DNA of 53,260 nucleotides from Octopus bimaculoides (GCF_001194135.2 NC_068989.1:29361647-29414906); one strand, 5' to 3'. Positions 17,095 through 45,308 are shown, counted from the first letter of the stretch. A program made the numbers and translations. The notes: generated from the sequence alone by a model not told the origin.

Positions 17095-18965
17095 ACTAGG
17101 GAAAGATGAGTGGATAGTGAGAGCTGTGCAAGCCATGTACAGGGATGCTGTCAGTAAGGTGAGGGTTGGCAACAAGTACAGTGAAGAATTCCGGGTAGAG
17201 GTAGGGGTCCACCAAGGTTCAGTCCTCAGCCCCCTCCTATTTATCATAGTCCTCCAGGCAATAACACAGGAATTCAAGACGGGATGCCCCTGGGAGCTCC
17301 TCTATGCTGATGACCTTGCTCTAATTGCTGAGTCACTATCAGAACTAGAGGACAAGTTTCAGGTGTGGAAGCAAGGACTAGAATCAAAGGGCCTTAGAGT
17401 CAACCTAGCTAAAACCAAAGTCTTAATAAGTAAGAAGGTAGACAAAACACAAACTCCTTCAGGTAGATGGCCCTGCTTGATCTGTAGAAAAGGCGTAGGT
17501 AGAAACTCCATAAGATGTACCCAGTGTAAGCTATGGACACATAAGAAGTGCAGCAATATCAAAGGAAGGCTAACTAGCAAGATAGTTTTTGTATGTGGCA
17601 GATGCTCAGGAGCAATAAACACTGAAAATGTGCAGAAAACAACCTTTGCCACACTCCAGGGAGAAAAACTAGAAGTAGTTGATAGCTTCTGCTACCTAGG
17701 TAACCAAGTCTGTAGCGGGGGAGGGTGCGCTGAAAGTGTATCTGCTAGAATAAGAATAGCCTGGGCAAAGTTTAGAGAGCTCTTACCTCTGCTGGTGACA
17801 AAGGGCCTCTCACTCAAAGTAAAAGGCAGACTGTATGACGCATGTGTACGAACAGCCATGTTATATGGCAGTGAAACATGAACCGTGACTGCTGAGGACA
17901 TGCGTAAGCTCGCAAGAAACAAAGCCAGGTATGCTCCGATGGATGTGTAATGTCAGTGTGCATACTCGACAGAGTTTATGAACCTTGAGAGAAAGGTTAG
18001 ACCTAAGAAACATCAGTGGTGGTGTGCAAGAGAGACGATTGCCCTGGTATGGACATGTGACAAGAATGGATGAGGATAGCTGTTTGAAAAAGTGCCACAC
18101 CTTAGCAGTTGAGAGAACCTGTGGAAGAGGTAGACCCAGGAAGACCTGGGATGAGGTGGTGAAGCATGACCTTCAAACTTTAGGCCTCACCAAGGCAATG
18201 ACTAGTGACCGGGACCTTTGGAAATATGCAGTACGTGAGAAGACCCGGCAAGCCCAGTGAGATCATAAGCTGTGACTTCTGCCAGAAGTGTAGCCAGCTT
18301 ACTTATTCATATCTTTACCTCATTGGACACTAAACTCTGCTTGTGAAGACCTGTTGAGGCAAGTGAATTTGAAATCTGAAATCGAAATCGAACTGAATCC
18401 GATGACTGGCACTTATGCCAACCTCTCCTTCGTTAGACACTAAACTCTGCTTGCGAAGACCTGTTGGGGCAAGTGAAATCGAAATTAAACTTGAACCATA
18501 TTTGATGACTGGCACCTGCTCCAGTGGAGCACTAACAGCACTGTCTGAGCGTGTTCATTGCCAGAGCAGCTGTCTGACTTCTGTGCTAGTGGCCCGTAAA
18601 TAGCACCATTTGAGCGTAATCGTTAGCAGTGTCGCCTTCTAACACTTGTGCTGGTGGCACGTTAGAAAATCATTCGGTACCAGTGCCACTGGACTGGCTC
18701 CCATGCAGGTGGCACATAAAAGACACCTTTTTGAGCGAGGCCGTTGCCAGTACCACCTGACTGGCCCTTGTGCCGGTGGCACGTAAAAGCACCCACTACA
18801 CTCTCTGAGTGGCTGGCGTTAGGAAGGGCATCCAGCTGTAGAAACTCTGCCAGATCAGATTGGAGCCTGGTACAGCCTTCTGGCTTGCCAGTCCTCAGTC
18901 AAATCGTCCAACCCATGCTAGCATGGAAAGCAGACATTAAACGACAATGATGATGATGATGAATG
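17095..18965 (+). mobile_element. 5'-truncated RTE-B LINE with RT core, embedded PHD finger, ORF end and full 3' UTR
   Basis: ORF 17117-17881: GVHQGSVLSPLLFIIVL, ELLYADDLALIA, GLRVNLAKTKV, VDSFCYLG, RIRIAWAKFREL; premature TGA at 17879-17881; (GAT)n tail at about 18950. Confidence 0.95.
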
Positions 18966-21549: not shown

Positions 21550-23972
21550 TATGGCCACGATACTGTAAAGTCATGGAAATTTGAAGCTCCGTAAGTTGGA
21601 ATAGTGTTTGTAATCTTTTCAGCCTTCTNNNNNNNNNNNNNNNNNNNNNNNNNNNNNNNNNNNNNNNNNNNNNNNNNNNNNNNNNNNNNNNNNNNNNNNN
21701 NNNNNNNNNNNNNNNTTTTTGGATTCTAACTACTTTTGGCAAAAGCAAATATTTTGCAATTTTCTCTAATTATTTAAAGATGGCTGATAAAGAAACCATC
21801 ATAATGTTTTATAATGGGACACATTCCTTGTCAGAGAAAAATGAGAACAGAGACGTAGAATGGCCTACACTTGGCAAATGTGTCACCGAGGCAAATACTG
21901 TTTCGTCTCTAAGCAACATCAAAACTTCCGGTGACAATGATGACAAAAACAACAGTAATAGCAGCTGCAGTGACAACAACAACAACAACAACGATACTAA
22001 AGAAGTAAAGCTTACAAACACGAACACCACCACTGCCACCACCACCAAAACTGCCTCTTCTGCAATTTCTTTTGTGATTGCTGCAAAAAATTTGGAGGAT
22101 TTCCACATAGATGAAGAAGATTTTAAAATGGCATGGAAAATTGTTAAAAGGAATAGAAGGGTAACCCTAAACCCTCCATCTGATGTAATAGAGAATATTT
22201 TGAGATGCACAGTCACATACTGCTGCATTGGAGTTAAATGATGCCAGGTGGAAAATGGTCCTAAGAGCGAAATACAAAAATGCCTTGGGCGCATGTGGGA
22301 ACAGAAGACTCACATCACCTGGGAAAAGAAGTTTGGAACTATTGAGATGATATTTGGGACAGAAGAAGAAACCAGTTATCATTCCAGGAATGAAAACTTC
22401 TTCTTAACCCCCAGCTATCATGGCCAATGCCTTGCTAAAGTTAGGGCATTGAATGTGCCACCAGAAATATCCATCACCTGGTTAGTGGCAACCACCTCAC
22501 CAGGTTTAGAAGACAAAGTAACAATCTTGGAGGTCAAGAAAATACCTAAGTAAAACTGGTCAGGTATAGGTATGGAACTGACCTTACAATGAAAGCAAGA
22601 CCATATCGACCAGCTGCCCTATCTAATCAATCTCTTGAATGGTACTCACCTGTCAGTATTAGTGGAGGATAGAAAGCCAAGATACTACAAATGTGGATCT
22701 GTGATTCACTTAAAGGCTTTCTGCCCTGAAACAAGAAAAACTAAACTCCCACTGCTGCCAATACTACAAACACCACAAATGCAAAATCATGAAGAAGTGC
22801 TCAAGATTCCTACACCCACACCCACATCCACTCCCAAACCAAGACAAAGAAGGAGTCTACCCCCAGTTGTCATGGAAAAGTAAGCTTCTCCTGAATGCTC
22901 TATCTTCCAAACCAACATCAACTGCAATGACATGGAGAAAGAAGAGCTGAACAAAAAAGGGGGCAGGCAAAAGAGGAGGAGAATACATGGTCCTACTCCA
23001 AGACTTCAACAAAAAGATACATAGGAACAACAGCTACAACACAATTCACAACCACTCCAATAAAAACAATAATGACAAGAACAATACCTTCAAAAACAAC
23101 AATAACAACAACAGCATGAAATCACAGAAACACAGACACAAGCAATTATGGAACTTCAAAAACAAGAATATTCATCAGTCTGTAAACGAAGTGTATCCAT
23201 CAATTTCCCTGTTGTGAACAAGTGCAATAGTGAATTGATAGATTTTGTAAGTCAAAACAAAAACAAAATAGTGACAGAGGAAAATGAATTTGAGGATGTC
23301 ATTCTCAAAACCCCAAAGGACAGATTTTTATTAGGTTGAGGAAAAAGTTTGTGTGCTGTGTTAAAATAATTCGTTTTTATATATTTTTGTGGTGTGTGTG
23401 TTCATTCAGTTCATTATTTTAACATGGTGCACAAACTTTTTCCTCAACCTAGTAATTAAAATGTCGTCAGACGTTTATAAAATTATAAGGGAAAAGTTCC
23501 CATGTAGTGTGGGGATTTTTCAAAAATCAGTTGATAAAAGGCTGTTGGAAGGGCCTTTTAAAAAATTTTCACCAGTAGAGAAGCGTAGATCTTCTGGACT
23601 TCTTGAAAATCAAGGTGAGTAACCTCCTCTTTTTGTTTCTCCGACTAGCATGACCGTGTTGAGAATGGGGTGTGTGAATGTGCTTGGTCTGGGATCAGCT
23701 TGGAAGCAAAGTCACTTGCTCAATGATCTCAGGTTGCTTGATTTAGATGTGGCTGCCATTAGGGAAACAAGGATCTCTGGAAAACACACTCTAGCATCCA
23801 TTTTCAAGGACTATGAGGTAATTTCATCTTATGGTCTATCAGGAGCAAGTGGCAGTGTAACAGTGCTACTCCAGAAATCCTTAGATCTCCAAGTATGAGC
23901 TATCTCCCTGGACCCAGATGGTAGGGTGGTGGTCCTGGATGTGAATGGCAGCAAAGGTGGTGCCTTTAGATT

Positions 23973-28967: not shown

Positions 28968-30594
28968 AATAAAAATAAATTAAATATAGAGATATTCTAT
29001 TGACAATCCAATAATTTATTTATATTACAATATTACATTAAATACTATGAATATAATATATAACATAGCATAATATTATATAAATAATTATAAAAATCAT
29101 AAAAGACTAACAAATTGTTTCAACTTATATATATTTTTTTTCTGATTTACTTAATCACAGTTCCATTACATAAAAGTCTCAAAAGGGTCCTTGGTTTCAG
29201 AAAGATGAAATCCCATGTGAAAGGATGGCTGGATTGTAAAAATTAATTCAAATGTCTGTGTTATGAGTGTGAGCGTTGACTATTCAATCTGACATCAATT
29301 ACAATTAAAAAACAACAAAAACACTTTAATGGACAATACAATCAAGTAAGTGCAATCCACAACTATCGAAATTCACTTCATTATATCTCAAACACATACC
29401 AATTGAAACCTTTTGATGTCTAAGAAGATAGTCTCTTGTCATCACAACATACAATGATAATATGTGTATATAAATGTATACAATTAAGTATCTAAGTCTT
29501 CTCCTATGTGTAACTGCAACAGAAAATATATAAGCAATTACATCTTCTCCTCCGAGAAATTAATAAATATAGATTATTATTAGTTAATTTAAACAATAAT
29601 TTTTTTTATACCAACTAATTTAAATAGATAAAAGAGTTGTATTGAAGATGTAATTCTTTACTCTTTACTCTTTTACTTGTTTCAGTCATTTGATTGCTGC
29701 CATGCTGGAGCACCGCCTTTAGTCGAACAAATCGACCCCAGGACTTATTCTTTGTAAGCCTAGTACTTATTCTATCAGTCTGTTTTGCTGAATTGCTAAG
29801 TTACGAGGGATGTAAACACACCACCATCGGTTGTCAAGTGATGTTGGGGCACAAACACAGATACACAAACATATACACACACATACATATATATATACAT
29901 ATATATGACGGGCTTCTTTCAGTTGGCCCAAGGCTATAATGGAAGACACTTGCCCAAGGTGCCACGCAGTGGGAATGAACCCGGAACCATGTGGTTAGTA
30001 AGCAAGCCTCTTACTACACAGCCACTCCTGCGCCTATATATTTTTATATGTTTTTTGTTGCAGTTACATGTAGAAGATGTAGATACTTAATTATATACAT
30101 TTATATGCACAAATATTATTATTATATGTTATGATGACAAGAGACTATCTTGGACATGAAAGGGTTTCAATTGGTATGTGTTTGAGATATAATGAAGTGA
30201 ATTTTGATGGTTGTGGATTGCACTTACTTGACTGTATCGTCCATTAAAGTGTTTTTGTTGTTTTTTAATTGTAATTGATGTCAGATTGAATAGTCAATGC
30301 TCACGCTCATAACACAGACGTTTGAATTAATTTTTACAATCCAGCCATCTTTTCAAATGGGATTTCATCTTTCTGAAACCAAGGACTTATATATAATGGA
30401 ACTGTGATTATATAAATCGGAAAAAAAATATATATAAATTGAAACAATTTGTTGGCCTTTTACAGTTTTTATAATTATTTATATAATATTATGTTATGTT
30501 ATATATTATATTCATAGTATTTAATGTAATATTGTAATATAAATAAATCATTGGATTGTCAATAGAATATCTCTATATTTAATTTATCTTTATT
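28968..30594. mobile_element. AT-rich foldback element, arms of about 580 bp, loop of about 95 bp, with a SINE in the right arm
   Basis: 28968-29547 is the reverse complement of 29643-29654 plus 30043-30594 (e.g. ccttggtttcagaaagatgaaatccc / gggatttcatctttctgaaaccaagg). Confidence 0.85.
29656..30034 (-). mobile_element. SINE family A with internal deletion
   Basis: Head ggcgcaggagtggctgtgtagtaag at 30034, tail gactgaaacaagtaaaagagtaaagag at 29656. Confidence 0.9.
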
Positions 30595-30730
30595 ATTGAA
30601 TTATATCAATATTTATATGGTATCCAACTGAAGTACCAGTGAATTGGATGTTTCACACACCCCTTTGAAGGATTTCTTTTCCTCAGTTTGTTACTTTATA
30701 TATATATATACATGTGTGTGTATATGTTTG

Positions 30731-31489
30731 TGTTGTGTCCCGCATTATAATGACTACTTTGTCATCTGCGTGACTGGCCCGAACGGCGTACCTTGCTGTC
30801 TGACTCCAGTCATTGTGTCTGTCCACTATTTATTTGTGGTGGAACAACCCACTTCTCTCACTCAGGGTATCCTCCATAACACCTTCTCTTTTGAAATTGT
30901 TTTTTTCTTCCACACAGAATTTTTTTTTCCACAATGCCCCAGGTAGTAACAGTTCTCCATTCTTTACCAGTAGTGCTACTAACACATAGCAACCTGACTG
31001 AAATCCTTCAAACGGACTTATATTATTTTTTTTTTCTGTGTCCCACTGTTGTGGAGTGCATGAAATTAGAATCCTCATCACCATTGTTGTATTTTGTGAA
31101 ACCTTCATCGCCACTGTTATATCTTGCATGTGTTTGAAACCTTTGTCAACAGGATTTTTAATATTTTTCACTGTGTGTAGTTCGAATCCTTCTTCCACAG
31201 GATTTTTAATATTTTTCTCTGTGTGTAGTTCAAATCCTTCTTCAACAGGATTTAATATTTTTCACTGCATGTTGTTCAAATCTTCATCACCACTGTTGTG
31301 TCTTATGTTAGCAATTTCAAACATCCCTCGTCACCACTGTTATGTCCCGCATTATAATGACATACTTCATCATCTGCGTGACTGGCCCAAACGGCATGCC
31401 TCGCTGTCTGACTCCAGTCACTGCATCTGTCCACTATTTATTTGTGGTGGAACAGCCCACTTCTTTAATTCAGGGTGTCCTCCACAACA
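30731..31489 (-). mobile_element. Complete TRIM-like miniature LTR retroelement (759 bp)
   Basis: LTRs 30731-30881 (151 bp) and 31338-31489 (152 bp), TGTT...AACA ends, 16 substitutions plus 1 indel by manual alignment; TSD GTTTG (30726-30730, 31490-31494); PBS TGGTGACGAGGGATG after the right LTR; PPT AAAAGAGAAGG before the left LTR; no ORF. Confidence 0.9.
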
Positions 31490-31494
31490 GTTTG

Positions 31495-31926
31495 GCACAA
31501 GGCCAGCAATTTTGGGAGAGGGGTAAGTCAACTACATTGACTTCAGTATTGACTAGTACTTTATTTTATTGACCCTGAGAGGCTGAAAGGCAAAGTTGAC
31601 CTTAGCAGTATTTGAATTCAGAACATAAAGACTCAGATGTGCCATTAAGCATTTTGTCTGGCACACTAATAATATTCTGCCAGTTCACTGCCTTTATCCC
31701 AATATTAATAATGGTTTCAAACTTTGCCACAAGGGCAGCCATTTTGGGGAAGGAGATGACTTGATTACATCGACCCAGTGTTTCACTGGTACTTATTTTA
31801 TCAACTCCAAAAGGATGAAAGACAAAGTCAACCTCAGCAGAATTTGAACTCAGAACGCAAAAACAGACAAAAATACCACTAAGCATTTCACTTGGTATGC
31901 TAACAATTCTGCCAGCTCGCCGCCTT
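31495..31926 (-). mobile_element. Two head-to-tail copies of SINE family B
   Basis: Copies at about 31495-31693 and 31705-31926, each with aaggc(a/g)g(t/c)ga(a/g)ctggcagaa head and central cctttcatcc-type domain. Confidence 0.8.
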
Positions 31927-31939
31927 AATAATGATAATA

Positions 31940-32240
31940 AACCCTCTTAAGTATGAAATAGCGTGGCTATGGAAAATGAAGGTGAAGTTAGTGCCAATTA
32001 TTGTTGGGTCCTTGGGAACAGTATCAGAAGGCATCAGGGGGAATATAAAAGAAATTGGAATAGAGTGCAAAGTAGAACTGTTACAAAAGGTTTGCCTACT
32101 TAGCATGGCCAGAATAATCAGGAAAATATTAAATAGCTGAATAGAATGGATAGCATGATACTGTAGGCTGCATGTAGGAAGCCTGCTATGCATGCAAAAC
32201 TTCAGGAGCTCCAACAAAATCTGTGATAAAGAGAAATAAT
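31940..32240 (+). mobile_element. 3' end of an R4/Dong/NeSL-type RLE retrotransposon
   Basis: PLKYEIAWLWKMKVKLVPIIVGSLGTVSEG...VELLQKVCLLSMARIIRKILNS* is the end of the restriction-like endonuclease domain; short UTR and (TAA) tail. Confidence 0.75.
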
Positions 32241-32432
32241 AATTTCTAACGGATCTTCACTGACATAGTGATATCTACAGATCAGAACATTGAATTAGAA
32301 AGTCAAAAGGTCTCAAAACCTGACATTTGAAGTGGAGTGTATTCATAGAGCCTCAATTATGTAGTAAGATTTTTGTTTACTGCATGAGTGCTGTCCATAT
32401 ACACTAACAAGGAAAATAAATATTCATTTTTC

Positions 32433-32967
32433 GGATCTTTTTTAAAACGGGGGCCACATTTTTCATTAATGTTTTACGTAGTGTTTTTGGTACCGAAAGA
32501 CTTTCAAACTTCGTATACTTATCTATTTTGTGTTATAGAACAGAAAAATATTTTTGTATTCGAATTTATTTCATGTAAAAAATTGTCTTATTTCGATAAT
32601 TTCAACCAATCACTGACAAGTATTCAGTTGTTTACATTTACTCCTTTGGCTGATTAAGCCATAACTTCGTTTTATTTGCTTTTTTCTTTTTAAATTTGCT
32701 GTTTTACCCTAACCCTATCACTGATAGAATTGTTTCAGAATCGTTTGTTTATGTAGTCGGCACTTAATGTATATCGGCTGAATGGACGTCAGTGATTGGT
32801 TGAAATTACAGAAATACGACAACTTTAACATGGAATAACTTAGGGATTTCTTTTTTTTTTAAGAAGACTAAGAGAAAAAGATGTTTTATATGACACATTC
32901 TACCAGTGTTCCAAGTTTCAAAGTGTTTCGTTAATGAAAAATGTGGCCCCCGTTTTAAAAAAGATCC
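32433..32967. mobile_element. MITE of the GGATCTTT family (535 bp)
   Basis: Perfect 37-bp TIR GGATCTTTTTTAAAACGGGGGCCACATTTTTCATTAA; internal aatttcaaccaatcactgac in both arms; accctaaccct at about 32706. Confidence 0.9.
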
Positions 32968-35329: not shown

Positions 35330-37725
35330 ATCATCATCATAATCATCATTTAACATCCATTGTCCATGGGTTGGACAGTTTGACTGGGCTGGCACGCTGG
35401 AAGGCAGTTCCAGGCTCCAGTCTGATTTGGTATGGTTTTCTTTGGCTGGACGCCCTTCCTAACACCAAGCACTCTGAGTGTAATGGGTGCTTTTATGTGT
35501 CACTGGCACAGGTGCCATTTGCATGACACTGGTATCTTCCACGACTGATTTTGCTTGACTTGATGGGTCTTCTTCTCAAGCACGACATAATGCCAAAGAT
35601 CTTGGTCATTGCTCTGTGAGGTCCAACACTCAAAAGGAACTCAGCCACCTTGCCTCCATGAAGCCCAACATTTGAAAGGAGCTCAGCCATTTTGTCTCTG
35701 TCAGGCCCAACGCTCGAAAGGAACTCAGCCACTATGCCTCCATGACGTCTAACAAAGTCACCTACTTTGCCTCTGTGAGGCCCAACGTTCAAAGTTTGAT
35801 TTTTTATGTGCCACCAGCACGGGTGCACTTGGCTTGTTGGGTCCTCTTAAGCAGAGCACATCGCCAAAGGTCTCGGTCACAAGCCATTGCCTCTCTGAGG
35901 TTCAAAGTTCAAAGATCATGCTTCACCACCTTGTCCCATGTCTTCCTGGATCTACCTCTACCACAGGTTCCCTCCACAGTTAGAGATCGGCACTTCTTTA
36001 CACAGCTATCCTTGTCCATACGCATCATGACCATACCAGTGCAGGCATGTCTCTTGCACACCACATCTGATTCTTCTTATGCCTAACTTTTCTCTCAAGA
36101 TGCTTACACTCTGTCAAATATGCACATCCAGCGAAGCATACTGGCTTCATTTCTCTCAAGCCTATGCATATCCTCGGCTATTATAGCCCATGTTTCACTG
36201 CCATGCAGCATAGCTGTTCGTACTCAGGCATCAAACAATCTACCTTTCACTCTGAGAGAGAGGCCTTTTGTTGGCAGTAGGAGTAGGAGCTCTCTGAACT
36301 TTGCCCAACCTAATCTTATTCTCACAGCTATGCTCTTGGAACATCCACCTCCACTACTAACCTGGTCACCTAGATACTGGAAGCTATCTACTATTGCTAG
36401 TTTGCCTCCCCCCGCCCCCGGCAGTTGATGGAGTCTATTTTCTGCACATGTTCAGCATTTATTATGCCAGTGCACCTTCCACAAACAAAAGTTAGTTTCT
36501 CTGTTAACCTTCCTTTGATGTTGCTGCACCTTTTGTGTGTCCAAAGCTTAGACTGGGTGTATCTTATGGAGTTTCTACCTACACCTTTTCTACAGATTGA
36601 ACAGGGCCATCTACCTGAGAGAATTTGTGATTTGTCTGCCTTCCTTCTTACCATGACTTGGGTTTTTGCTAGGTTAATTCTAGACCTTGTTTCCATACCT
36701 GGAACTTCTTCTCTAGCTCAGGTGGTGATTCAGCTATAAGAGCAAGGTCATCAGCAAAGAGAATCTCCCAGGGGCAGCCTGCTTTGAATTCCTCTGTTAT
36801 TGCCTGGAGGACTATGATGAACAAGAGTGGGGGGGGGCAACACCGATCCTTGGTGAACCTCTACTTGTACCTTGAATTCTTCACTGTACTCATTGCCCAC
36901 CCTCACCTTACTGGTAGCGTCCCTGTACAAGGCTTTTACAGCTCTCACCAACCACTTGTCTATCCCTAGTTTCTGCATTGATCGGGGGGACTCTGTCAAA
37001 AGCTTTCTCGAAGTCAACAAAAGCTAAGTACAGAGGTTTATCTTTGGCCAGGTATTTCTCCTGCAGTTGCTTTACCAGAAATATAGCATCAGTGGTGCTT
37101 CTACCTGGCACAAAGCCAAACTAGACTAACTCTCTCCCTGATTAGATAAACTATGACTCTCTCCGCAACTTTCATCACCTGATCTAACAACTTGATACCT
37201 CTGTAATTATTTGTGTCTAAAGCGTCACCTTTACCTTTGTAACAGTTGACTATGGTGCTGCTACACCAGTCATTGGGTATGACTCCTTCATATATCACCT
37301 GGTTAACAATACGGGTGACTAGACCATAACCCACACCACTGGATATTTTAAGCATCTCAGCAGTGATTCCTGACAGGCCGGAGGAGCTTTCCCTGCATTC
37401 ATATCCTTAATTGCTTTATCTACCAGGGTACTGTCAATTTGGGTAACTGGTCCCTCGGTTGGGTCAACATTTGGCAGACTCTCCTCCTCCCATTCATTCT
37501 CCATGTTCAGCAGTCTTTCATAATGGCATCCCCAAGCCTCTTTCTTTGCAGACTCATTGACAGCAAGAGTACCATCATCCATGTGGACACATTTCTCTCC
37601 TATGACATCACAATTTTCTCTCACACACTGTCTTGCAATCCGAAATACTTCAGTTCATTGGTCCTCATGGAGATGAACATAGGCAAATGTCTTTTCTATT
37701 TCTCCCTTGGCTAGATAAACACTGA
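35330..37725 (-). mobile_element. Older, degraded RTE-B-related LINE (RT through 3' UTR)
   Basis: WCSSTIVNCYKGKGDALDTNNYRGIKLLDQVMKV, PGRSTTDAIFLVKQLQEKY, AFVDFEKAFDRVP, VHQGSVL, PHD-like WPCSICRKGVGRNSI; (GAT)n tail at about 35335. Confidence 0.9.
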
Positions 37726-42793: not shown

Positions 42794-45220
42794 TTAATAG
42801 TTGGAGTGATACTATGATGGCCAATAGTGTTGACATTTTAAATTTGTCTACACATATATAAAAGATACCACATTTGGTCCCAAGACTAGTTCCAAAACAT
42901 TACCTGAAGATTATTGGAAAGAATATTTGTAGAAGGATGTCAACACCAGTAGAAATAACTCATCTCAGAAAAATTCAGACAGGTAAACTTTTCATATTTT
43001 CTTTTTCCTTTGACTACAAAGGAAATATATGAGTTTCATAGAACAAAATGCTGCAGCTTGTGCATGCTTTGTACACAATAATGAGGTAAGCAATATAGTT
43101 GCCAGTGGATGAGATCAAATTGAAGAAGTGAAAAAAAAAAAAAGGAAAAAGAAAAATCAACAGGACAGAAAAAAAAATCATTATTAGCAGGATTTGAACT
43201 CAGGAAGTACAGACATAGCACACTGTCCAAAATAATAAAATTTATTTAGAGCTCATATATATTTACAATAATTTACTCATAAATTATTTCAAATATGTAC
43301 AAGATTTTGTAAGCTGTCACTGGGAACTTTGTACCAACAACATGCAGCTAAGAATATTAGACAATAATACATTGCCCAGAAAATGAATAGCTAATGAGAG
43401 ATGGAGTGAACATTTTTTGGATTACACTATCATAAACCATTGACTGTAAAGGTAATATATTTCTGATTCTTTGTTAATGAACATATATAACATCAGCGAA
43501 TTAATAAAAACAGTTATGCAGCACTCTAGAATGTTTTGCAACATTCACTTCCATCTTTCTCAAGTCAATGAGTTCATCTGTTTTATAGCCAGATGCCATT
43601 CCTGTTTTTCAAATAAAGAATCTATTTGACACATCTATGAAAGTGCAAAGTAAGCATATTTGTTGATAGATGTGACAACATTGCCCGTAGTGACATTCAT
43701 AGATCATGCAAATGTACACAAACACATAGCTATACACACACACATATATATACATACAAGACAAATTTCTTTCAGTTCTACCAAATCCATGCACAGGGTT
43801 TTGGTAGGCCTGGAGCACAAAGTGCCATGTAGTGAAATGAAAAGTAAAATTCATAGGAAAAAGAAAATATGAAAAGACATGGTTGAAAAGCAAACTTCAT
43901 AACCACACAGCCATACAAGAGCCTGAGCTAATAATAAACCAGTTCAAAACATTATATTTCATCTCCTTCCATCATTGGTTGCATGCTTAATCTAAAGAAA
44001 ACACTAATTTTATATGTCAATGATGAAAAAGCAAATGGGCTTATTTTAAATTTATTCAACACTTCAACTAAGAAAAAAATAGGTGGGAACATCATAAAAA
44101 CTCAAGAGAAAATAAAAAATTAATTTTAATGATAGTTGCCACAAAGGTTAACTTAATTAACTAATTATTCAGCCCATCTCAAATTGTGTTTGAATGTCAT
44201 TTTATACAATTCTTTTCTTTCTTGTTTGTTTAGCAAGAGTTTTGAACTAAAATGATGTATCATTATAGATGTGTTTTGAAAAAGTTATTTTTACCAATAC
44301 ATGCATAAGCTACGGTCTCACTTGTCTAATTTATTTTTATAGATTAAGCTAGGATTAACAGAAGAGTAAGTTTTATGAGAAGTGAGCAGAAATCTTGAAG
44401 ATATGTTTGAAGGATTGGTGCATTAACGCTGTATAATTGTTTGAATATGCAAATTGCAAATATCAAATATGAAACTCATTGATCTTCTGGATGATTTGTT
44501 AATCGCTTATCATTGGCTGATCTATATATAATTTATTTGACTGATAATATCCTTTATTAACAATTCAAAATTAAAGATTTTGCCATCAGAGTGATTATGA
44601 TTGCAAAGATAACAAAAGGATGGTCTTTTTTTACTGTTTATTCAAAGAAAGTATCCGGTAATTTGTCTCTTTATATCTCATTTACACCTAATACGAAAAA
44701 GTTTTGTTAACATTTCAAATTGTATATCAGTCCATCTTTTGTTTCTTTTATACTCATCTGTGATTAGCCAGATCAATACAGATACACTTTTCATATTTAT
44801 CACAATTCTGTAAATCTATTTTCATTGGTTTTAATCATGCCACCTTCCAACTCCTGATTATCAGGACAATGTATTATTCTTTTACACTCTATTATGTGTA
44901 TGTGTGTGTTAAATGCAGTTCCTGTCACAAGGATATGCACATGTTACTATGTATCTTCAACTACTTCTGATAAACTATTTGGAGAAAATTTCTTTCCAGC
45001 TAAATATTCCCTCTAGAAAAGAAATTAGAGTTGATAAGAATCATTTGCTTTATCTAATTTGGCAATTCTTATCCTTCTAATTTTGCTTTTCATTGCTTCT
45101 GGGTTCCTAAAATAAGTATCACATACACCAAGTTTAATTTAACTGACTATAGAACTTCTTACAAAAAGCTAGTATGCTCTGTAAAAGGAATATTAATAAT
45201 AAAATAAATATGAGCTAATA

Positions 45221-45305
45221 CACACACTAAAACTGGAATGATACAGACAAGATTAGCATGGCCTCTGCACAAGGATGACAAGTAAATTCATGTGATCCAT
45301 GTTTT
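45221..45305 (+). pseudogene. U6: U6 snRNA pseudogene, 5' stem-loop missing
   Basis: cacacactaaaactggaatgatacagacaagattagcatggcctctgcacaaggatgacaagtaaattc...ccatgtttt aligns to U6 from about nt 18 to the oligo-U end; ACAGAGA box mutated to ACAGACA. Confidence 0.9.
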
Positions 45306-45308
45306 ACA

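Follow-up and report, generated by a model that had tools for sequence, protein, structure and literature searches.

Why is the interior of a small octopus retrotransposon dominated by repeats of its own primer-binding junction, and were these repeats used? The question arises in a 53,260-nt stretch of Octopus bimaculoides DNA (GCF_001194135.2 NC_068989.1:29361647-29414906), which was analysed whole and is termed the window here; it includes 2622 N in scaffold gaps, and positions are counted from its first letter. The region 31489-30731 on the minus strand is a complete TRIM, an old non-autonomous LTR retrotransposon by its defining features. The element is 759 bp long with an interior of 456 nt, and its parts, in their order on the minus strand, are the following.

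31490-31494, minus strand: TSD CAAAC on the 5′ side of the TRIM, read directly as ...GCCAAAC followed by TGTTGTGG
31338-31489, minus strand: 5′ LTR, TGTTGTG...CATAACA (BLAST self-match of 88.8% over 152 nt, E 1e-51; alignment; nhmmer 179 bits)
31325-31336, minus strand: PBS TGGTGACGAGGG of the last cycle, with linker G at 31337 and junction CA-G-TGG (pairing with tRNA-Ser-GCT)
30893-31025, minus strand: unique, non-repeated rest of the interior, 133 nt (no significant match to the HMM of the repeat units; no other match in the window)
30882-30892, minus strand: PPT AAAAGAGAAGG, abutting the 3′ LTR (read directly)
30731-30881, minus strand: 3′ LTR of 151 nt, TGTTATG...CACAACA, with terminus ...GGGACACAACA (BLAST, alignment, nhmmer)
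30726-30730, minus strand: TSD CAAAC on the 3′ side of the TRIM (read directly)

The LTRs, of 152 and 151 nt, differ in alignment by 16 substitutions and one indel (89.4% identity), an LTR-LTR divergence of about 11% for this single copy. Both start with TGTT(G/A)TG and end with CA(T/C)AACA, which provides TG..CA termini with a short terminal inverted repeat. Transitions account for 15 of the substitutions and a transversion for the other, and two TG/CA doublets are ancestral CpGs that decayed on opposite strands; the LTR pair at this locus thus displays a strong transition and CpG-decay bias. The element resembles TRIMs in its short LTRs, non-coding interior of <500 nt, PBS at the 5′ LTR, PPT at the 3′ LTR, TSD and total length of <1 kb. 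The two ORFs in the TRIM (162 and 122 aa) are without a Pfam domain, and the 162-aa ORF, a spurious frame that spans the repeats, was without a homologue among 5.8 billion proteins in a search that would also catch ORFs on other copies.

The octopus element nevertheless departs from described relatives. Unlike TRIMp3 elements (Helenus/Ajax/Cassandra), its LTRs carry no tRNA- or 5S-like sequence, and unlike a retrozyme they have no hammerhead in Rfam, while the repeat units read GUGAUGA and not CUGAUGA (PMC10886601). These differences draw on ARAGORN, which predicted 0 tRNA genes in the window, on Rfam at its gathering threshold, which gave no hammerhead, and on an Rfam search of 30300-32300 at E up to 10, which returned no tRNA, 5S or hammerhead match in or near the TRIM. 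The TSD is 5 bp in comparison with 4 bp in the animal Helenus. A reading of the TRIM as a structured RNA, ribozyme or snoRNA was rejected: nothing exceeded the Rfam threshold and the fold of the leader RNA was unremarkable (z = +0.40). The GUGAUGA of the PBS-like units (31282-31292, 31103-31113 and 31073-31083, minus strand) is also a C-box motif, but as a snoRNA C box it was discarded and treated as chance, the archaeal C/D match in Rfam scoring 14 bits against a threshold of 36. The only Rfam match above threshold in the window is a full-length U6 spliceosomal RNA at 45208-45306 on the plus strand (70.2 bits, E 8e-16).

Several other repeats populate the window. Two tandem SINE-like copies of ~232 bp, 74-78% identical to each other, adjoin the TRIM at 31561-31940, with the target site CAAAC at their edge. 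A (CA/TA)n microsatellite (30696-30733) abuts the 3′ LTR and its TSD, and a 35-nt copy with 94% complementarity to this microsatellite lies 800 bp away at 29863-29897. A sequence at 32433-32967 looks like a young MITE-type DNA transposon: its 37-nt terminal inverted repeats match perfectly (32433-32469 and 32931-32967) and bracket 461 nt, in which an inner 49-nt inverted repeat is nested (32579-32627 and 32778-32826). LINE-type RT fragments are present at 17117-17881 (plus strand) and in many ORFs; the best match is 80% identical to a protein of Octopus vulgaris, as expected of an octopus host. A repeated ORF motif, SESVVGAFTCHPH..., is found at several places.

The primer was sought among a panel of 38 human tRNAs, of which 13 sequences were taken from PMC10359600, including tRNA-Ser-GCT-1-1 (...GGGTTCGAATCCCACCCTCGTCGCCA), and 25 served as negative controls only. 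The PBS forms 12 consecutive pairs, one of them G-U, with the 3′ end of human tRNA-Ser-GCT plus CCA, whereas the next best tRNA of the 38 forms 7. With the two strands of the window taken together, none of the ~101,000 18-mers forms a better duplex with the 3′ 18 nt of this tRNA than the PBS (-24.3 kcal/mol); other strong sites for the tRNA-Ser end, near 36419 and 36907, consist simply of G-rich runs and were dismissed as PBSs. The CA-G-TGG junction has the same arrangement as in retroviruses. By this pairing, reverse transcription of the TRIM is predicted to be primed by tRNA-Ser(GCU), an assignment made with the human sequence that assumes a conserved acceptor stem and an octopus 3′ end of ...CCTCGTCG(CCA). 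Possession of a PBS for tRNA-Ser(GCU) distinguishes the element from biv-TRIM, which is without a recognisable PBS (PMC6934838).

The earlier note had described the interior, on the minus strand, as an array of LTR-end plus PBS units with 48-bp tandem units and a tRNA T-loop complement between them. All of these features are present, at or within 1-3 nt of where it had placed them. The 16-mer AACARTGGYGATGARG, with ≤1 mismatch allowed, matches four times on both strands of the 53 kb and each match is on the minus strand in the TRIM interior: 31341-31326 (the true PBS, with 1 mismatch), 31297-31282, 31118-31103 and 31088-31073. Shuffles yield an expectation of 0.01 such matches. The proposal that these units form an interior array is supported. 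The three internal sites of recurrence were therefore listed correctly, but a fifth motif that combines an LTR end with TGG, CCACAACAGTGG at 31054-31043 (AACAGTGG at 31050), had been missed; in all, the array has five ACAYAACARTGG-like sites. The tandem units, which had been placed at 31149-31285, were recovered by Tandem Repeats Finder as a 48-bp repeat of 3.1 copies with 87% matches at 31146-31289 (score 218). The copied LTR end also proved longer than the 4 nt that had been claimed. The 19-mer ATGCGGGACAYAACAGTGG joins the terminal 15 nt of the LTR to the linker G and TGG, and is matched by ATGCAAGATATAACAGTGG at 31129-31111 with 3 mismatches, all of them transitions (0.00 expected); up to 16 nt of LTR end were copied into the units. 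The region is A/T- and purine-rich, and loose similarities are easily drawn by eye in such sequence, but the excess of 16-mer matches, the 19-mer match and the repeat score run counter to chance or low-complexity resemblance, an explanation which the shuffles refute and whose probability is next to nil.

The array extends from 31352 to 31026. With borders set at a recurring ATGC-like anchor, it consists of eight adjoining units, which measure 37, 45, 48, 48, 45, 37, 31 and 36 nt. MAFFT aligns all eight in register. Four units (S1, S2, S6 and S7) are of the PBS type and three (S3-S5) of the 48-bp type, whereas only a stub remains of S8.

31316-31352, minus strand: S1, last 15 nt of the LTR, then G, the PBS and GTTTGAA, a decayed T-loop complement (alignment; unit HMM E 1.6e-4)
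31271-31315, minus strand: S2, GACACAACAG followed by TGGTGATGAAG and ATTTGAAC (motif match, alignment, HMM)
31223-31270, minus strand: S3, 48-bp type, A/T-rich spacer followed by TGTTGAAGAAGG and ATTTGAAC (Tandem Repeats Finder period of 48; similarity to S2)
31175-31222, minus strand: S4, 48-bp type, with an intact GGATTCGAAC at 31189-31180 (Tandem Repeats Finder, motif match, alignment)
31130-31174, minus strand: S5, 48-bp type, shortened, TGTTGACAAAGG followed by TTTCAAAC (repeat comparison, alignment)
31093-31129, minus strand: S6, ATGCAAGATATAACAG (16 nt of LTR end with 3 transitions) followed by TGGCGATGAAGG and TTTCAC (19-mer match; duplex with tRNA-Ser)
31062-31092, minus strand: S7, ATACAACAA followed by TGGTGATGAGG and ATTCTAAT (motif match, alignment)
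31026-31061, minus strand: S8, truncated, ATGCACTCCACAACAG and TGGG, then an A run (motif; unit HMM E of 0.13 only)

An HMM of the eight units matches only these eight places in the 53 kb, the next match having an E of 0.62, and candidate remnants of further units near 31015 and 30916 were not significant with this model. A proposal that the LTR itself ends in a further unit (CAGATGATGAAG in U5 is PBS-like by eye) was abandoned when the LTR body minus its last 16 nt gave p values of 0.79 and 0.87 for local similarity to the array. Sequence similarity links the two unit types. In S3, TGTTGAAGAAGGATTTGAACTAC matches TGGTGATGAA-GATTTGAACAAC of S2 at 19/23 positions (p = 0.003 before correction), and the similarity between S5 and S6 is weaker (p 0.048 before correction). 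As an HMM trained on only the four PBS-type units misses the 48-bp units when the whole window is searched (E 4.6), the common origin of the two types to which these similarities point is moderately supported and not proven.

The array comprises 311 of the 456 interior nt (68%), but sequence complementary to tRNA amounts to ~100 nt (~22%). The interior therefore is about one-fifth anti-tRNA and not two-thirds as had been suggested, and the remainder of the array is copied LTR end and A/T-rich spacer. Within the tRNA-complementary part, units S7, S6 and S2 form duplexes with the 3′ 18 nt of tRNA-Ser-GCT of -19.2, -18.6 and -12.8 kcal/mol, respectively. Among window 18-mers, S1, S7, S6 and S2 rank in the top 0.004%, 0.1%, 0.13% and 1.5%, and for each of the four, Ser-GCT is the best partner of the 38 tRNAs. 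Consecutive pairs with tRNA-Ser number 11 in S7 (2 of them G-U), 9 in S6 and 9 in S2, and S6 retains a C opposite the discriminator G of the tRNA (TGGCG...). Pairing above that of controls accordingly is upheld for the four PBS-type units, whereas the three 48-bp units, and also S8, pair with the tRNA 3′ end at background level.

The T-loop complement withstood scrutiny as an anti-T-arm sequence: published tRNA sequences contain GTTCGAATCC, to which GGATTCGAAC is exactly complementary (PMC10359600). It is found as GGATTCGAAC in S4 and as GGATTTGAAC at 31237-31228, both within the 48-bp repeat (GGATTYGAAC), and the window has 4 matches to the motif compared with 0.2 expected. An extension of this complementarity, in which the 48-bp unit would copy tRNA-Ser through the variable and anticodon arms, had some appeal in gapped local alignments but was rejected: with identical scoring, Ser-GCT did no better than Ser-CGA, Leu or Sec. 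The sequence accepted here as tRNA-derived is confined to the PBS and the T-arm 10-mer.

What might the original unit have looked like? Comparison of the units points to an ancestor of ~42 bp that straddled the U5/PBS junction. It held 8-16 nt from the LTR terminus, the linker G, a PBS part of 11-12 nt (TGGCGACGAGG) and a T-arm complement of 9-10 nt (GGATTCGAAC), which by then lay closer to the PBS, by 4-5 nt, than in the complement of a real tRNA. The differences among units are mostly transitions, many at CpG. The CG of TTCGAA, which is intact in S4, has become TTTGAA in S1-S3 and TTCAAA/TTCACA in S5/S6. Similarly, the two CGs of TGGCGACG are variously TG, as TGGTGACG in S1, TGGCGATG in S6 and TGGTGATG in S2 and S7. 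As the variable positions are mostly at CG, the ancestral unit may be reconstructed as about ATGCGGGACAYAACA-G-TGGCGACGAGG-GGATTCGAAC-(A)CAC. Its PBS and GGATTCGAAC parts are exact complements of tRNA-Ser-GCT in the correct order and on the correct strand, and the chance expectation for such a perfect 10-mer in 456 nt is about 4e-4.

The spacing between these two parts is informative about how the units arose. The T-loop complement starts 16 nt after TGG in the complement of a canonical tRNA and 14 nt after it in S1, but at 11-12 nt in the internal units, which consequently have in common a shortening of 4-5 nt relative to the real tRNA. This shared shortening, together with the copied U5 end, indicates that the units are copies of one another and not fresh copies of tRNA. 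The same two features in all internal units disfavour the idea, raised in the earlier note, that the array records abortive strand transfers which occurred repeatedly. In that scheme, each unit would have been templated afresh from a primer tRNA as the plus strand was made, and synthesis would then have switched back onto U5. Such iterated read-through would account for the composition of the units, which are a U5 end joined to >18 nt of anti-tRNA in the correct order, and for unit borders of (A/G)TGC that resemble both U5 (TAATGC) and the complement of the tRNA variable arm (GCGTGC). However, no canonical tRNA could supply the shortened sequence and the internal units thus inherited it from one template; in addition, similarity beyond the T arm is gapped and not significant, with local alignment scores for the 48-bp unit of 35.5 for Ser-GCT versus 40 for Ser-CGA. 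Fresh templating of every unit is quite unlikely.

The (A/G)TGC borders are positions of short identity between the leader and U5 (TAATGC). They are compatible with template switching by RT or with replication slippage, which the data do not separate. An alternative route to multiple junctions is the collapse of a tandem TRIM, such that an LTR-interior-LTR-interior array lost most of each LTR and interior by deletion. Plants, cestodes and bivalves harbour tandem TRIMs that carry additional LTRs (PMC6934838), but to generate the octopus array the same type of deletion would be needed seven times, and apart from its last 16 nt the LTR does not resemble the array (p about 0.8). A collapsed tandem accordingly has a very slim probability.

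The age of the array can be gauged against the LTR pair (identity 0.894). Identity among the 48-bp units is 0.87-0.91, as in the LTR pair, which dates this triplication to about the time of insertion. The PBS-type units are 0.72-0.84 identical, with differences that are mostly transitions. Between types, identity falls to 0.63-0.75 and the differences are transversion-rich, beyond the LTR rate with P down to 4e-6. As this divergence exceeds that of the LTRs, the two unit types appear to have separated before insertion. The comparison suggests that the array, with both of its unit types, predates insertion of this TRIM copy, and presumably it was carried through at least one round of retrotransposition. 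A pre-insertion array is the sole evidence, and an indirect one, in favour of the array as a feature of the family.

Which units were used? Both LTRs end at the same base, which demonstrates that S1 primed the cycle that produced the present copy: S1, which adjoins the LTR, was the only unit used as PBS in that cycle. Each PBS-type unit nonetheless keeps A(C/T)AACA(G/A)TGG, the junction as at the real LTR end, and three of the extra units are formally competent, as judged from their sequence, as 'integrase end + CAGTGG + PBS' modules. If priming took place at one of these, the product should in principle have a longer LTR with a valid integrase end. The array might then be a selected cassette with several start sites, in which tRNA-Ser primes at any PBS-type unit and redundancy protects against mutation or 3′-tRF silencing. 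Apart from the conserved junction, this possibility draws on the 11, 9 and 9 consecutive pairs of S7, S6 and S2 with their best-matching tRNA, on pairing that survives C-to-U changes as G-U, and on the 18-nt core of LTR end and PBS, in which the PBS-type units differ from their consensus by transitions only and which seems better kept than the flanks. Short PBSs and initiation at two PBSs are familiar from other systems: Ty3 and Ty1 function with PBSs of 8-10 nt, and retroviral vectors with two PBSs, as Voronin and Pathak reportedly observed in 2003 and 2004, initiate at both. The octopus RNA is like these vectors in its more than one predicted tRNA-binding site, but the vectors are artificial with full 18-nt PBSs, whereas the octopus array is natural and decayed with matches of 9-12 nt.

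Several observations oppose a selected cassette. The 3′ LTR of the present copy ends at the normal place through use of S1, the three central units have lost the PBS, and neutral decay also produces transition-only differences, as the 15:1 ratio in the LTR pair illustrates. The better-kept core would fit selection and also neutral decay with that bias, and selection cannot be shown from one copy. A selected multi-start cassette has a low but real probability. That a single TRIM RNA actually starts reverse transcription at several PBS-type modules, so that progeny LTRs differ in length and the element is buffered against PBS loss or silencing, is somewhat more doubtful still. A different function would be that of a decoy or sponge, in which the anti-tRNA repeats titrate 3′ tRNA fragments or tRNA-Ser and thereby shield the TRIM or an autonomous partner from PBS-directed silencing. 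LTR retrotransposons are repressed by 3′-tRFs via the PBS (bioRxiv 10.64898/2026.01.22.698655), and each TRIM RNA would provide four sites that pair with one tRNA end. Nevertheless, complementarity of 9-12 nt is short in comparison with the 18-22 nt of tRF-guided targeting, and the TRIM copy is old and decayed; a role as sponge is highly unlikely.

The account that we consider probable, with some reservation, is that the array is a tolerated by-product of serial duplication in a TRIM primed by tRNA-Ser(GCU). Ordinarily, plus-strand strong-stop DNA extends over 18 nt of primer tRNA and halts at m1A58. In the standard scheme of reverse transcription, an initial stretch of >18 nt of anti-tRNA is most simply explained by read-through past position 58: plus-strand synthesis would have read further into the primer tRNA and a small deletion would have followed. 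The array then would have grown by serial duplication, through RT template switching or replication slippage, for which the short ATGC/TGC identity where units adjoin is a possible site. In an element without coding constraint the extra units most likely were tolerated as by-products, and the copies have since decayed mainly through transitions, many at CpG.

Parallels for parts of this arrangement exist elsewhere. Second contacts between primer and template are made by the Ty1 boxes with the T and D arms of tRNAiMet, by the bipartite PBS of Ty3, by the PAS of HIV-1 with the T arm, and by RSV U5 with the T arm. The octopus element is like these systems in having, besides a short PBS (11-12 nt), a further segment that complements the T arm of its primer tRNA. 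However, its putative T-arm box is repeated and immediately follows the PBS on the 3′ side, which gives the impression of a tRNA copy that has undergone a small deletion. A strong-stop-DNA model for tRNA-derived SINEs was reportedly put forward by Ohshima et al. in 1993 for a squid SINE. The octopus units share with that model the joining of U5 to a long stretch of primer tRNA, but contain only the 3′ third of the tRNA, in antisense, and reside inside an LTR element and not in a free SINE. Short tandem arrays also occur in non-coding parts of LTR retrotransposons, for example Ogre/Tat elements, where they are seeds of satellite DNA (PMC7004042). Like those arrays, the octopus repeats are head-to-tail, tens of bp long, in an untranslated part, variable and fast-evolving; unlike them, the repeat unit includes the LTR terminus and the PBS. 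Domination of the interior by tandem copies of its own U5-end/PBS junction also sets the element apart from known TRIMs. We know of no description of repeated U5-end/PBS units.

Further copies of the element were sought by several routes. BLAST and nhmmer searches with the TRIM, the LTR and the unique interior found no second copy in the window or in a 20-kb O. vulgaris locus, and a route to the orthologous locus via the ORF at 21780-22241 gave no match. Exact LTR patterns in metagenome (two scans), prokaryotic genome and viral contigs returned nothing or chance matches of 19-23 nt.

The TRIM, with its clear PBS for tRNA-Ser, joins the few animal TRIMs in a genome, that of the octopus, in which LTR elements have received little attention. 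A private duplication, confined to one dead copy, would make the array no more than a curiosity. If instead it is a feature of the family, the array would be a natural counterpart of engineered retroviral vectors with two PBSs. It then would offer a simple system in which to study how the presence of several PBSs affects primer choice, plus-strand transfer and LTR boundaries, whether silencing by PBS-directed tRNA fragments selects for redundancy, and how tandem repeats originate inside retroelements. Should the start modules be real, the octopus TRIM would be a retroelement that naturally carries its primer-binding cassette in multiple, redundant copies.
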